A stretch of 64,000 bases of DNA, taken from NCBI RefSeq assembly GCF_000143415.4, contig NW_003314271.1, positions 2,609,729-2,673,728 on the forward strand, written 5' to 3'. Under the pieces are notes generated by a model that did no database searches, was not told the DNA's origin, and worked only from the letters and a program-made list of their open reading frames with translations. Position numbers and translations under genes: made by a program. This document shows positions 37,956 through 43,222 of this stretch, piece after piece; the stretch's first letter is position 1; each line of letters begins with the position of its first letter. The stretch is from Selaginella moellendorffii. Taxonomy: Eukaryota; Plantae; Lycopodiophyta.

Positions 37956-38601
37956 ATGGCGGGGAGCAGTGGTCTGGCGACAGCGGCCAAATATTTCAGC
38001 TCCGCGATGCGAAGGAACGCAGCGATCAGGCAGCCGCTGAGCGCGATGCGCACCAGGAGCGGCGGATGGGGATTGCCGCTGCCGCCGGAAGAAGAAGTCT
38101 CCGCCCCTGTAAGTTTTTCTTGCTCGATCTAGGATAATGTAGCTAGTTTCTGAGGAACCCGCGCAATCTGTGACCTAGGTAGAAATCGTGTGATGTCTCC
38201 CTTCTACTGTGATCCTTTGTTTTTATCTCAGGTTCCCGAAGAGTATGAGCTTTGGTGGGGAGGAGAGCGCGTTGACGAGGATCCTACTGACATAGATAAG
38301 GTATGCATTTTTTCTTCGATTTTCTTCCTGGTTCTAGCTAGATAGTGTTTTGCAGTGGGAAGCTCTTGGAATGTGTTGCGCTGGACTGTCTTTCTTCGCC
38401 ATACTCGGGGTTCTTGCACACTACCGAGCTAAATATTCTAAGAGGCCTTATGTAAGTGATCGTAGAGTTTGTGGTGTCTTCTTGGACTAACTTATATACT
38501 TTGAGAAGCCACTGCGAGAGTTTCCTTGGCTTGAAGAGTGGGATAGGCTTATCCCGGTGGAGGAGCGAGAGCAAAACTTCGATCATCCTCAAAACTACTG
38601 A
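37956..38601 (+). CDS. NDUFB8: Mitochondrial complex I subunit NDUFB8/ASHI; multi-exon
   Basis: Presequence, RTRSGGWGLP...VPEEYELWW, WEALGMCCAGLSFFAILGVLA TM helix, KRPYPLREFP; parallels plant NDUFB8. Confidence 0.72.
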
Positions 38602-38931
38602 TGTGGTAACTTTGCAAGCTTTCCAAATTCCTGTTTTGTTATGTTTCTAAATTTTCCTCCTCGAGACTTTCTGTCGTCTGGGAAAATCGCAGGAATCCGT
38701 CGTGATCTCCCAAGGGTTTTGCCTAGGTTCTTTCGCAGTGGTGGATCTCTGTGCAAATAAGAAATGAAAATAACTCGGATTCCAGGTGGTGTCTCTTCAA
38801 GTTCGTGTGATGGGAACATCAATAGGTGCTAGTGTGATGGAAGGGTGACCACCAACAGATTTTGCAGGCTATGGGTATATATCTCATCGTGGAGGACTTT
38901 TCCGCAATTTTTGTTGGATCTTCTCTGCGGA

Positions 38932-40848
38932 ATGGCTCTCAGAGCGGTGCTTTTCTGTGCTCTTGCTCTGGTTTTGGCGGAGCTGAGCTCGGCTCAAGCT
39001 GATGGTGGTGGGAAACATCTGGACGACATGATCGGGCAGCCTGAGGGAGCGGATTCGCTGCCGAGCGATGTGTTCGCCCCGCTGGAGAACAGGCTTGCAG
39101 AAGGTGGTCAAGTAGAGGAAGCCGATAGTTCGCTTCCGGAGGGGATGACAATGCCAGAGTCGGAAAGGCTTCAGCCATCTCCGGGAGGAGCTCCATCTCC
39201 GTCGACCGGGGATTCTTCCCCTGACAACGACGATGAGTTGATGAAGAAGGAAGCCTTGGCAAGTCTCGAAGAAGCACAGCTCTATCTCCAGCGGGCTCGG
39301 GTGATCGAGACGACGGAGGAATGCAAGGCCAGTTTGTACTCGGCCAACGGCGAGCTTGCATGGTGCGTGACTTTCTTGCTGGAGCTGAAATACAACGAGA
39401 CACTTGACAAGCTCGGCAACGCAAAGAGAAGCTTGGCGCAGTGTTCTTCCGCTCTCTCAATGGACAATTCGGTAAGATCTCGACCTTCGAGTTGGTAAAT
39501 ATTTTGTTCTCATAACTATTGACTTTGCAGGGTGATGCTACCAGACCTCTGCTATATCTCGTCCAGAAAGCACTCTCTCAGATAGACGAAGCGAAAATCA
39601 CCGTGAGCGGGCTAACACCACCTCCGAGTGAATTTCCCAGCACGGAATCGGTGGAGTTTGAAGGCAAGAAAGCATCGTTTCTCTTCATTTTTTAATAGTG
39701 ATATTTGCTCGCAGGTGTTGGAGTCCGGGACTCGTGCAAAGTGGACGGGACAACTTGCCAGTTCTCGAACTGTGGGAAAGGAAAGAAGTTGCCAAAGTGT
39801 GCTATCGGCTATGCTGGGAGTGTGACTGGGGGAGCCAGGGGTACCATGTACACGGTCACAAGCTCCGACGACAATCCATCTCGGCCACAGGGCGGCACCT
39901 TTCGTTATGGAGCTCAGCTGGCCAACGGGAGAAACGGAGGGGTTTGGATCACCTTTGCTCGGAGCATGACTATAGTCCTCCGCGACATGGTGTGGATCCG
40001 GAGCTCCACCACGGTTGATGGACGTGGAGTGAACGTCGTCTTTACCAACAAATGCTTCGTTCTCGGCGGTGTCAGCAACGTTATCCTTCACAACTTCGAG
40101 ATCTCTCGAGTGCCACAGACGGATACAATCCACATCTTTGGATCCTCGAGGGGCGTTTGGGTGGATCACATCACGTCCTCGGACGCGAAGCTCGGCCTCG
40201 TCTCGGTTGTCCAGGGATCGACCGACGTGACCATCTCAAACTGCTATCTTTCCAACAAGAACTTCAACATGCTGCTCGGTGCCTCGGATGCGGACTCGCA
40301 GGATCGAAACATGCGCGTGACCATCTTCCGGAACTGGTTTAGAGACTCGATGCAAAGGATGCCTCACTGCAGGTAACACAATCCTTCGCAAGTTCTTAGA
40401 TCGCTTTAGCTTAGTTCGTGCGAAAACTTCCACAAGAGTTTTCGTTCTTGCTTACATTCTTTCTTACAGGTGGGGATACTGTCACGTTGTCAACAATCTC
40501 TACACGAACTGGGGATACTACGCCATCGGAGGAAGAGCAAACGCACAGATCCTGTCCGAGAGCAACGCGTTCATTCCCGGCCGTAGGCGTGAGGTAACGC
40601 CATGGTTTCCAGGTGCCTCCAAAGCTCTCGATCAATCATCGACGATTCAGTCGAGAAACGATCTCTATCTTGGCGGTTCTACGTTCCATCAGTTCGTCCT
40701 CCTCGGGAAGAACTCGCAGCATCCAAAGTACGTTACGCCGCGCCATGCTCCTCCGGTTGTAACTCCAAATCGTCTCACAAAGATGATCCAAGCTTGCGCT
40801 GGCGCGCTCTATGGACAGAAGCTCCAGCGCTGCCTCTACTCGAGCTAA
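38932..40848 (+). CDS. Secreted pectate-lyase-family (PL1) protein with N-terminal acidic linker and PMEI/invertase-inhibitor-like helical domain; 4 exons
   Basis: Signal peptide; exons splice in frame (introns ~39472-39530, ~39664-39714 probably GC-AG, ~40373-40469); PL1 motifs TVDGRG, WVDH, RMPHCR, HVVNN.YTNW..YAIGG. Confidence 0.82.
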
Positions 40849-40986: not shown

Positions 40987-43222
40987 ATGGCGACGAGGCG
41001 CTCCCTGATGGCGCCGATCCGACGAGCACTCCAGGTGAGAGAAATGCGATCGTCCAGCGCGCGTAATGTGTCCTTGTGCTGTGGAAGACACGCATTTCAA
41101 GGCCGATCTCCACTGCGGCGATCAATGCGGGGCAGCCGACGCCCGAAACGCATCCGGAGGTGAGATTTTGGATGAGCGATCGTCTCTGTTTTTGATCTCT
41201 TGTTTGTCAGCTTCTTGAGGCAGGGGAGATTATGCCCGGGATTTCGGCCGCCGAGTTCCACCAAAGACGGAAGAGCTTGATGTCGATTCTTCCCAGGAAC
41301 AGCTTGGTAGCGATAGGCTCTGCGCCGATCAAGACGATGAGTGATATCATTCCTTATCCTTATCGGCCAGACTCGGATTATCTTTACTATACTGGCTGCC
41401 AACAGCCTGGTGGAATAGCGGTGATCAAAGCCAATGGCGATCTTTGTATGTTCGTCTCTGATCCAGATCCCGAGGTAAGGCTATGATATTTTTTTTACCT
41501 GAAAAAACATGATCAGAAAAAAACAATTACAGCGGTCTGTGTGGGATGGAACTCTAGCGGACAAAGAAGCTGCACTGTCTGTTTTTCATGCCAACGAGAC
41601 GTATACAATAGCCGAAATTCCAAAGGTTCGTTATGTTCGTTCGCGCTTTGTTGCTGCTAACTTTCTTCACTTTATAGTATTTTGGTGAGATGGTCAAGTA
41701 TGCCAGCGGTGTATATTGTAACGAGAACATACTGAGTCCTACGTTCCGGAAGGTTTCGAAAATTCAAGAGGCCTTCGAACAGAACAAGTTGAGGAGCCTG
41801 TCTCCACATTCTAGCCAAATCAGAGTTGTTAAATCGCCCGCAGAGATCAGCTTGATGAAGCGGGTAGCGGATATTAGTTCACAGGTACGCGTGCGCTTGT
41901 TGTTAATGCACATGGATTGCCTAACTGGCTGCAATCTTGCAGGCATTCATACAAACTATAAAGACGTCAAAGCACTGGCCGCACGAACATTTGCTGGCTG
42001 CTACCATAGAGTACGAATCAAAAATCAGAGGAGCCCAGCGCATGGCGTAAGGACTATATTGCTAACGTAAACCTGGAACTCTTTGATCTTTAAGTGCTTG
42101 CTTTTTCCGTTCGCTACTAGTTTCTTCCTGCCGTTTCATATGTTGCTATGTTTCATACTTGCAGGTTTCCTCCTGTTGTAGGAAGTGGAGCAAATGCTAG
42201 CGTGATACATTACTCTAGGAACGACCAACGAGTGAGATTTCTTGCTCCAAAGTTTGGAGGCCGACTTTTCTTTTTTGTTGCTTAGATCCGGGAAGGAGAC
42301 TTGGTCCTTATGGATGCTGGCTGCGAGCTTCACGGATACGTCAGTGACATCACACGAACTTGGCCACCTTGCGGGTCCTTTAGCCCGGCCCAGGTCTGTG
42401 CTTGCTTCGTTTTCAACTCGTCCTTGAGCAAGATTACTTTATTGCAGAGGGAAATTTATGAGATTGTTCTATCAACAATGAATGAGTGCTTCAAGTTGTG
42501 CCATCCTGGTGCGAATCTACTACAGATCCACTCGCACTCTGTAAGCAGCTGTTACAAAAACGAGTTGTGATACGGTTCTGAAGGTACAGCTGCCTTACAG
42601 ATGCAGCTGTTGTCGAAGGCTCTGATCGGTCTTGGTATCAAAGGACAAGGACATTCCCCACCAGACGTTGGAAAATTTAATCCGACAGCTATCGGTACGC
42701 GATTGCAGTTTTCTTGTTCGAGTGACTTACGTGTTTTTCTTGGCTTGAAGGACACTATCTCGGGATGGATGTCCATGATTCTGGTGGAGTGTCACGGGGA
42801 GAATCCCTCCGCCCTGGTATGGTACGTACGTACACATTCTGTTGATCTTTCGTTTTGTGCTTATATGATACGTTCCTGTCAGGTTTTAGCAATAGAACCG
42901 GGCCTCTACTTTCCAAAGGACGCCGATGTCCCAGACAGGTCAGCAAAATTTGATGTATTCCCATGAGCCGATTGAGCAAGCCGAGCTAATCCAGGTACCG
43001 TGGCATTGGCATACGTATTGAGGACGAGGTTCTCATCACCGACAGTGGTTACGAGGTGATAATATGTTTTCTCGCTTGTGGATCCAAGCTAACTTTAAGT
43101 CGCTGTCCTCCCAGGTTCTTTCAACGTCCATTCCGAAAACGATAGAGGAGCTGGAGCTTTGCATCCAACAAGGTAAAGCCAAAGCCTATCCCCCCACTCT
43201 CGGGTCGTCCCAAGCTACATAG
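40987..43222 (+). CDS. ICP55: Mitochondrial intermediate cleaving peptidase 55 (M24B Xaa-Pro aminopeptidase family); many exons
   Basis: GQPTPETHPE, EFHQRR, PYPYRPDSDYLYYTG, MDAGCELHGYVSDITRTWP, HYLGMDVHD, IEPGLY, GIRIEDEVL. Confidence 0.9.

Follow-up and report, generated by a model that had tools for sequence, protein, structure and literature searches.

Analysis of a 64,000-nt window of the Selaginella moellendorffii genome (contig NW_003314271.1, positions 2,609,729 to 2,673,728; all coordinates below are those of the window) revealed a four-exon gene on the plus strand, at 38932-40848, whose product joins an N-terminal helical domain to a β-helix of polysaccharide lyase family 1 (PL1). 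The β-helix domain is a PL1 member that retains the catalytic Arg439 together with Arg444 and Asp361. The helical domain is predicted to adopt the fold of pectin methylesterase inhibitors (PMEI), and the sequence comparisons indicated that the protein belongs to a streptophyte-wide subfamily that originated before land plants. The locus is an expressed gene for a secreted two-domain protein of an old PL1 subfamily, and the results taken together make it moderately probable that the lyase acts independently of calcium on an uncharged substrate and is regulated in cis by the N-terminal domain.

Gene structure, transcripts, and domain organization

The four exons occupy positions 38932-39471, 39531-39663, 39715-40372, and 40470-40848, and the ATG and stop codon fall exactly at 38932 and 40848. 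Joined together, they form a 1710-nt in-frame coding sequence for a protein of 569 residues. The translation was identical, letter for letter, to XP_002968302.2 (P0166), which NCBI names "pectate lyase 1 [Selaginella moellendorffii]". Intron 2 has a non-canonical donor; its placement at 39664-39714 was the sole in-frame solution and agreed with the 51-nt stretch skipped in transcript contigs, within an ambiguity of 3 nt.

Among the public sequencing runs searched, approximately 18 from eight studies contained the locus. Most of them held 0.72-0.86 of the sampled words, which is the share expected if introns and flanks are missing. In four runs from four studies, one contig each spanned all four exons and lacked exactly the 59-, 51-, and 97-nt introns. 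Since single contigs cross all the exons, the helical domain and the lyase are encoded on one mRNA. Thus, the single in-frame spliced gene proposed in a preliminary description of this locus was confirmed in its start codon, stop codon, and coding sequence, as was the single transcript across 39470-39715; the signal peptide, the acidic and proline-containing stretch, the helical Cys-containing domain, and the PL1 β-helix that it had listed were all present. The 2011 gene models of the locus are 232-residue fragments, which may explain why the architecture escaped earlier family studies.

The features of the gene are as follows (all on the plus strand; AF2, AlphaFold2; pLDDT, predicted local distance difference test score):

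38932-39000, +, signal peptide, residues 1-23 (MALRAVLFCALALVLAELSSAQA); hydrophobic N-terminus followed by AQA, helix at residues 2-21 in the AF2 model
39001-39222, +, disordered acidic stretch rich in Gly, Pro, and Ser, residues 24-97; AF2 pLDDT 33-42, composition
39223-39471, +, helices 1-3 of the PMEI-like bundle, residues 98-180; AF2, Foldseek, VIA-align
39322-39324, +, Cys131; invariant column in alignment A1
39442-39444, +, Cys171; invariant column in alignment A1
39472-39530, +, intron 1, 59 nt, GT-AG; interrupts the N-terminal domain between helices 3 and 4, skipped in contigs of four runs
39531-39663, +, exon 2, helix 4 of the N-terminal domain followed by a flexible linker rich in Pro, Ser, and Glu; AF2
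39664-39714, +, intron 2, 51 nt, GC-AG, phase 1
39715-40372, +, exon 3, Cys-rich cap and most of the PL1 β-helix; PF00544, alignment with Jun a 1, MAFFT comparison
40122-40124, +, Asp361, in exon 3
40191-40205, +, LGLVS in place of DGLID, in exon 3
40263-40265, +, Phe408 in place of Lys, in exon 3
40356-40372, +, RMPHC and two bases of the Arg444 codon, in exon 3
40373-40469, +, intron 3, 97 nt, GT-AG, phase 2, within the Arg444 codon; skipped in contigs of four runs
40470-40848, +, exon 4, remainder of the β-helix (WGYCHVVNN; YYAIGGR with the clade-specific Arg466), C-terminal CAGAL...C segment, and stop codon

The disordered stretch at residues 24-97 was specific to this paralogue and was missing from its relatives in the alignment. 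Helix 4 covers residues 184-208 in the AF2 model, so that the N-terminal domain ends at residue 208 (nt 39614); it is followed by a disordered interdomain linker (residues 209-231, pLDDT 39-47) and by the PL1 β-helix domain (residues 232-569). The latter matched PF00544 (Pectate_lyase_4) over residues 314-478 with 101.9 bits against a cut-off of 24 (E 5e-29). In the full-length AF2 model, residues 268-506 form stacked short strands, mostly with pLDDT >90, which corresponds to a right-handed parallel β-helix.

The copy of the gene on the second haplotype, XP_002976075.2 (P0285), differs from XP_002968302.2 at 11 residues, four of which lie in the disordered stretch and one in the 111-residue N-terminal domain. 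In this copy, residue 445, immediately after RMPHCR, is Leu instead of the nearly invariant Trp445.

Active site of the lyase domain and distribution of the subfamily

Among solved structures, the closest in sequence to the lyase domain was the cedar pollen allergen Jun a 1 (E 1.8e-47), followed by VexL (E 7.5e-36); classical bacterial and fungal PL1 enzymes were far behind both. The protein has the fold and family (PF00544) of the canonical plant pectate lyase-like proteins (PLLs; PL1, represented by Jun a 1, PDB 1PXZ) and shares with them the signal peptide, the WxDH and RxPxxR motifs, the CAIGFA cap, and the YAIGG motif. Two of these motifs, W373-V-D-H (residues 373-376) and R439-M-P-H-C-R444, were intact and invariant within the clade to which the protein belongs. 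The clade differs from the canonical PLLs in the added PMEI-like domain, in its separate phylogenetic position (99% support), and in a series of changes around the active site. In place of DGLID, the Selaginella protein has L384-G-L-V-S388, in which both Asp residues are gone. The DGDAI motif reads QTDTI, the first Asp being replaced by Gln and the second being retained as the clade-invariant Asp361. Phe408 stands where the canonical HxKvmLLG motif has Lys, a position occupied by Phe or Tyr in the land-plant clade with one outlier, Ile (P0206). In addition, a loop of approximately 20 residues ahead of the DGD motif is deleted relative to Jun a 1 and the sampled canonical PLLs, the middle Arg of RMPRCR is His442, and the Ser of AIGGS is Arg466 (AIGGR).

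The carboxylate-binding Lys corresponds to K190 of PelC. The calcium ligands of PelC are given as D129, D131, E166, and D170 (Herron, 2003, as cited in PMC5487484). One of these four ligands was kept in the Selaginella protein (Asp361); the other three and the Lys were replaced by Gln, Leu, Ser, and Phe. The clade has also gained three invariant residues, His364, His442, and Arg466, and the invariant Asp416, Asp418, and Asp421 are likewise close to the motifs. The preliminary description had read the WVDH, RMPHCR, and LGLVS motifs correctly and had concluded that the calcium site was lost, which agrees with our results. Its reading of QTDTI as a loss held for the first Asp and failed for the second, and the replacement of Lys by Phe408 had been overlooked.

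PL1 enzymes without the calcium site are known from two other groups. Fungal pectin lyases (Aspergillus PLA and PLB, PDB 1QCX; EC 4.2.2.10) likewise have a PL1 β-helix that lacks the Ca2+ site and keeps the catalytic Arg; by sequence, they were only distant relatives of the Selaginella protein (E 2.8e-6). PLA and PLB retain a single Asp (Asp154) and do not have the carboxylate-binding machinery of Lys and Ca2+. Position 384, which corresponds to the first Asp of DGLID, is Leu in the Selaginella protein and in most land-plant members, and Arg in Adiantum, Closterium, Spirogloea, and Mesotaenium; by a match estimated from offsets only, it would be the equivalent of Arg176 of PLB, so that the neutralizing Arg would be present only in the algal and Adiantum members. 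In PLB, Arg176 performs the neutralization in place of Ca2+, and Arg236 is the base (PMC10992409). The second group is represented by VexL, the Vi-antigen lyase of Burkholderiales (PDB 6FI2), which is also a PL1 enzyme without the Ca2+-binding Asp motifs. VexL is metal-independent and insensitive to EDTA, works best at pH 5.5, and has as its substrate a decorated polymer of the galacturonan type (PMC6003464). However, its essential Lys195 and Arg235 align with Phe408 and His442; thus, the VexL solution is not shared by the clade. VexL further differs from the Selaginella protein in its bacterial origin, its periplasmic location, and the lack of a PMEI-like domain.

To explore the distribution of the subfamily, exon 3 was used as the query of an exhaustive HMMER scan that covered 1.84 billion representatives; no more than 38 proteins were returned at E<=1e-30, the best of them being proteins of 500-570 residues in which the lyase likewise began near residue 200. 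In a word search with the Ginkgo member as the query, a sharp gap separated clade members (333 bits or more) from canonical PLLs (198 bits or less). A word search with a eudicot query (Coptis) retrieved only 65 proteins at E<=1e-70, and among these 65, core eudicots and grasses were missing and Acorus was the only monocot. Members of the clade were found in bryophytes (Sphagnum, Physcomitrium, Marchantia, Riccia, and Calypogeia), lycophytes (four Selaginella paralogues and Diphasiastrum), ferns (Adiantum and Ceratopteris), gymnosperms (Ginkgo, Taxus, and Cryptomeria), and angiosperms (Amborella, Nymphaeales, magnoliids, Acorus, Ranunculales, Proteales, and Trochodendrales). Marchantia and Physcomitrium have one or two copies each.

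Approximately 45 land-plant members shared a signature consisting of D361, H364, WDH, S/T388, F/Y408, R439, H442, R444, and R466. In the same columns, the sampled canonical PLLs had D-D (DGLID), K, R-P-R-R, and S. A maximum-likelihood tree of 85 lyase domains, with support values from the Shimodaira-Hasegawa-like approximate likelihood ratio test (SH-aLRT), recovered the land-plant clade with a support of 95. Its sister was a clade of Zygnematophyceae (Closterium, Spirogloea, and Mesotaenium), also with a support of 95. The grouping of both was separated from the canonical PLLs by a branch of 0.62 with a support of 99. The algal sisters were intermediate in their active site, having Arg at position 384 and still keeping the second Asp of DGLID. 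Thus, what had been described at first as a peculiarity of one gene proved to be the conserved signature of a whole subfamily. Because the signature is conserved across the subfamily, a decayed lyase is unlikely, and the invariance of the catalytic Arg across the land-plant clade argues for retained catalysis.

Several individual sequences deviated from this pattern. The Closterium proteins P0007, P0204, and P0207, plus P0010 and P0011 (all five of 900-1050 residues), contain two lyase-like stretches with Met in place of the catalytic Arg (MPLR); they are probably non-catalytic derivatives. In three further Closterium gene models (P0210, P0212, and P0089), the lyase domain occurs together with a ubiquitin-conjugating enzyme domain (PF00179); these are probably fused gene predictions. 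The sequence P0211, which is labelled as belonging to the transcriptome of the alga-eating amoeba Leptophrys vorax, grouped with a Closterium protein (SH-aLRT 99) and most likely originates from prey RNA.

The possibility that the clade corresponds to a known divergent group of plant PLLs was also considered. Published PLL phylogenies give five clades (McCarthy, 2014, PMC4108027; Bai, 2017, PMC5487484; bioRxiv 10.1101/2024.12.04.626843). Poplar PLL group V, also referred to as CAZy PL1_12 or "Clade 5," is likewise described as divergent, and one paper reports that group V PLLs lack the Ca2+ site (PMC6852159). According to the published descriptions, however, its members have no signal peptides, keep the functional residues, and are found in Arabidopsis and poplar. 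The identity of the two groups was rejected because these descriptions differ from the clade in the absent signal peptide and in the kept functional residues. It was also rejected on the basis of candidate group V sequences from Fraxinus, Nyssa, and Actinidia (assigned by Arg364), which keep DGDAI, DGLID, and Lys and fall with the canonical PLLs in the tree.

A search of the open-access full-text literature for fusions of a PMEI-like domain with a pectate lyase returned nothing relevant, and no description of the subfamily was found in the literature searched. The combination of domains is common in non-model plants, but the same literature yielded no account of it. In reviews of the PMEI superfamily, the earliest PMEI-type domains are those of pectin methylesterases (PMEs) with a PRO region (PRO-PMEs), placed after the split of mosses from charophytes, and a lyase fusion is not mentioned.

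The N-terminal helical domain and the surroundings of the gene

The N-terminal domain was compared with the PMEI family by both sequence and structure. By sequence, PF04043 had no match at E<=10 in P0166 or in its residues 95-230, and a Pfam search of the exon translations and of the whole protein yielded PF00544 only, with PMEI absent. For ten full-length or near full-length clade members and the N-terminal pieces of others, Pfam returned mostly nothing or unrelated weak matches. The PF04043 profile matched one of the 23 N-terminal domains of alignment A1. Weak matches below the cut-off of 29 bits were obtained for the paralogue P0163 (15.9 bits, E 0.014) and for P0025 from Spirogloea (16.5 bits, E 0.0095), and the two shared the same profile register (71-130 and 72-130). 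A hidden Markov model of the 23 domains, searched against all PDB sequences, detected no PMEI and only noise at E ~1, and a phmmer search of the PDB with the two weakly matching domains found nothing relevant.

The predicted structure was a better guide than the sequence. The AF2 model built from the N-terminal domain alignment was a four-helix bundle with pLDDT 92 and a predicted template modelling score (pTM) of 0.82. In a Foldseek search of 350,542 PDB chains, the top seven hits were all PMEI or invertase inhibitor (CIF) structures (E 2e-3 to 4e-2; template modelling score (TM) 0.46-0.76). In a VIA-align search of 48,161 representative chains, AtPMEI1 (1x8z_A) ranked first with a Z-score of 16.6 and a root-mean-square deviation (rmsd) of 1.8 Å over 109 residues, kiwi PMEI (1xg2_B) ranked third (Z 15.7), and tobacco CIF (1rj1_A) ranked fifth (Z 14.1); thus, all three cluster representatives of the PMEI family were within the top five. 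The four-helix up-and-down bundle of these three structures (1X8Z, 1XG2_B, and 1RJ1) superimposed on the model with an rmsd of 1.8-2.3 Å over 104-109 residues. A structure search of the ESM Atlas gave only generic microbial bundles, and its language-model search gave no usable match. By fold, the N-terminal domain is predicted to be a four-helix bundle of the PMEI/invertase-inhibitor type.

The only invariant columns among the 23 domains of alignment A1 were Cys131 and Cys171, and the mean column identity was 25%. The spacing of the two residues was 40-42 in every non-angiosperm member and in the Spirogloea and Mesotaenium homologues. A spacing of approximately 40 is that of the second disulfide of PMEIs and invertase inhibitors, which joins helices 2 and 3, and the pair could bridge the same two helices here. 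PMEIs also have an N-terminal hairpin with a first disulfide. In contrast, the structural alignments of 1x8z, 1xg2_B, and 1rj1 began at PMEI residues 27-29, without the hairpin, and no Cys pair was seen upstream of helix 1 in the alignment; in these features, and in scoring below the Pfam threshold, the domain differs from the PMEI family. With regard to the PMEI-like domain claimed in the preliminary description, the fold and the Cys pair were thus recovered, but a significant sequence match to PF04043 was not. Considering both sides, we regard a genuine PMEI-type homology of the domain as quite probable.

The closest known counterpart of the domain arrangement is found in type-I PRO-PMEs, which have the same layout of signal peptide, PMEI-type domain, and pectin-active β-helix enzyme. 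The difference is that the partner in the Selaginella protein is a PL1 lyase and not a CE8 esterase, and that an RRLL/RKLL-type processing motif is absent. In addition, the Spirogloea and Mesotaenium homologues already carry the N-terminal domain, so that it is present in Zygnematophyceae, whereas the literature puts PMEI-PME fusions after the moss-charophyte split. In Spirogloea muscicola (P0025/P0158), the PMEI-like domain and the lyase are separated by an extensin-like linker of approximately 116 residues, 59% of which are proline.

Upstream of the gene, in the interval 38576-38694, contigs of two runs splice 38605 to 38666 and thereby remove a 60-nt GT-AG intron; other contigs are unspliced. 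This splice connects an upstream exon with the 5' leader of the gene, and the upstream exon carries the stop codon (38598-38600) of a neighbouring plus-strand open reading frame. It may represent either an intron in the 5' untranslated region or a read-through or overlap with the 3' end of the upstream gene. Downstream, at 41232-41483 on the plus strand, an aminopeptidase P N-terminal domain (PF05195, E 6e-19) marks the start of the next gene, an ordinary neighbour without any visible functional link.

Proposed mode of action, alternatives, and significance

According to the account favoured here, the β-helix would still be a β-eliminating lyase and would work without calcium. Since every group that neutralizes a free uronate carboxylate has been replaced by uncharged residues, the substrate would be expected to carry a C6 group that is already uncharged. 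Such a substrate would most likely be methyl-esterified or otherwise uncharged homogalacturonan, as in the case of fungal pectin lyases, perhaps cleaved at the acidic pH of the wall; a uronate protonated at wall pH could be an alternative uncharged form. VexL and pectin lyase B provide a precedent for metal-independent PL1 lyases. The tethered N-terminal domain may cover or otherwise regulate the cleft of its own β-helix in cis, as a chaperone, autoinhibitor, or targeting module, by analogy with the PRO region of type-I PMEs (function of the PRO region, PMC8990755), which would protect freshly synthesized esterified pectin in the Golgi from the lyase. The fact that only one of the 11 haplotype differences falls in the N-terminal domain was counted in favour of this account.

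A number of observations weigh against it. On the side of the lyase, land-plant members do not conserve an equivalent of the neutralizing Arg of fungal pectin lyase, and the residues Lys195 and Arg235, which VexL depends on, are replaced by Phe408 and His442. On the side of the N-terminal domain, homology with PMEI is below significance by sequence, unrelated four-helix bundles reached Z 13-16 and TM 0.6-0.77 in the structure searches, and angiosperm members do not retain the Cys pair. Regulation in cis is weakened by the very variable surface of the domain and by the search of the interdomain linker for a dibasic or subtilase site of the RRLL/RKLL type, in which none was conserved; the full-length AF2 model, with a pTM of 0.63 and a disordered linker, is silent on docking of the domain at the cleft. 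Moreover, activity, inhibition, and processing are predictions for every member of the clade.

Two alternatives concern the lyase domain. The β-helix may be a non-catalytic, pectin-binding pseudo-lyase with a wall-binding, structural, or signalling role, which would fit the loss of three of the four Ca2+ ligands and of the Lys, the lack of a conserved replacement neutralizer at position 384, and the existence of a related Closterium subgroup in which even the catalytic Arg is gone (MPLR). However, pseudoenzymes usually relax such positions as Arg439, Arg444, Asp361, and WxDH, which are invariant over approximately 45 land-plant sequences, and metal-independent PL1 lyases do exist; we therefore consider a pseudo-lyase rather improbable. 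The opposite alternative, a Ca2+-dependent pectate lyase of the ordinary kind with other acidic residues as its calcium ligands (Asp361, Asp375, and the invariant Asp416, Asp418, and Asp421), would agree with the NCBI name "pectate lyase 1" and with the presence of several invariant Asp residues near the motifs. Both Asp residues of DGLID and the Lys are, however, universal in the sampled canonical PLLs and bacterial Pels, and those positions are all non-polar or neutral in this clade, which makes such an enzyme highly unlikely.

The other two alternatives concern the N-terminal domain. Up-and-down bundles are common, and the domain could be a lineage-specific four-helix bundle of other origin, such as a propeptide or an oligomerization domain, whose likeness to PMEI is convergent. 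The absence of a significant sequence match to PF04043 or to PDB chains of PMEI, the missing hairpin and first disulfide, and the Z-scores of 14-16 reached by de novo bundles, ROP, and TTYH, together with the generic bundles in the ESM Atlas, would be expected in this case. Convergence would leave several results to coincidence: the occupation of the Foldseek top seven by the PMEI family and the placement of all its three representatives in the top five of 48,161 chains, the invariant Cys pair with the spacing of the second PMEI disulfide, and the two independent weak Pfam PMEI matches in one register, all in a pectin context. An unrelated bundle thus appears unlikely. It is also conceivable that the domain is a true PME inhibitor acting in trans, delivered with the lyase so that the surrounding pectin stays methyl-esterified, as was proposed as the first option in the preliminary description. 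The PMEI-like fold and a lyase apparently built for an uncharged substrate would suit this role, but the domain lacks the N-terminal hairpin and, at a mean column identity of 25%, has no invariant residues besides the two Cys. Such variability fits poorly with a conserved PME-binding surface, and we find inhibition in trans very doubtful.

The breakdown of pectin in plants is usually described in terms of polygalacturonases and of Ca2+-dependent pectate lyases that act after de-esterification by PME, and pectin lyases that cut esterified pectin directly are, to our knowledge, known only from microbes. Against this background, a conserved and expressed family with a remodelled, calcium-free active site would be a concrete candidate for a plant pectin lyase. 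Next to PRO-PMEs, the family is also a second case in which a PMEI-type domain is joined to a β-helix enzyme acting on pectin, and with it the record of the PMEI-like fold extends to before land plants arose. The family reaches from the algal sister group of land plants as far as poppies and proteas and is absent from Arabidopsis, rice, tomato, and poplar, which would explain why it has never been studied; the one or two copies in Marchantia and Physcomitrium make genetic tests feasible.

A bolder proposal, to which we assign only a small chance, is that the subfamily constitutes the plants' own pectin lyase, which would be independent of Ca2+, would cut methyl-esterified homogalacturonan, and would be restrained by its PMEI-like domain in cis. 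The PMEI fold itself would first have arisen, or first been enlisted, as the partner of this lyase in an ancestor that Zygnematophyceae and land plants share. If this is true, the partnership of the PMEI fold with a lyase would predate both PRO-PMEs and free PMEIs, and the disappearance of the family from core eudicots and most monocots would reflect a shift in the way these plants remodel their pectin.

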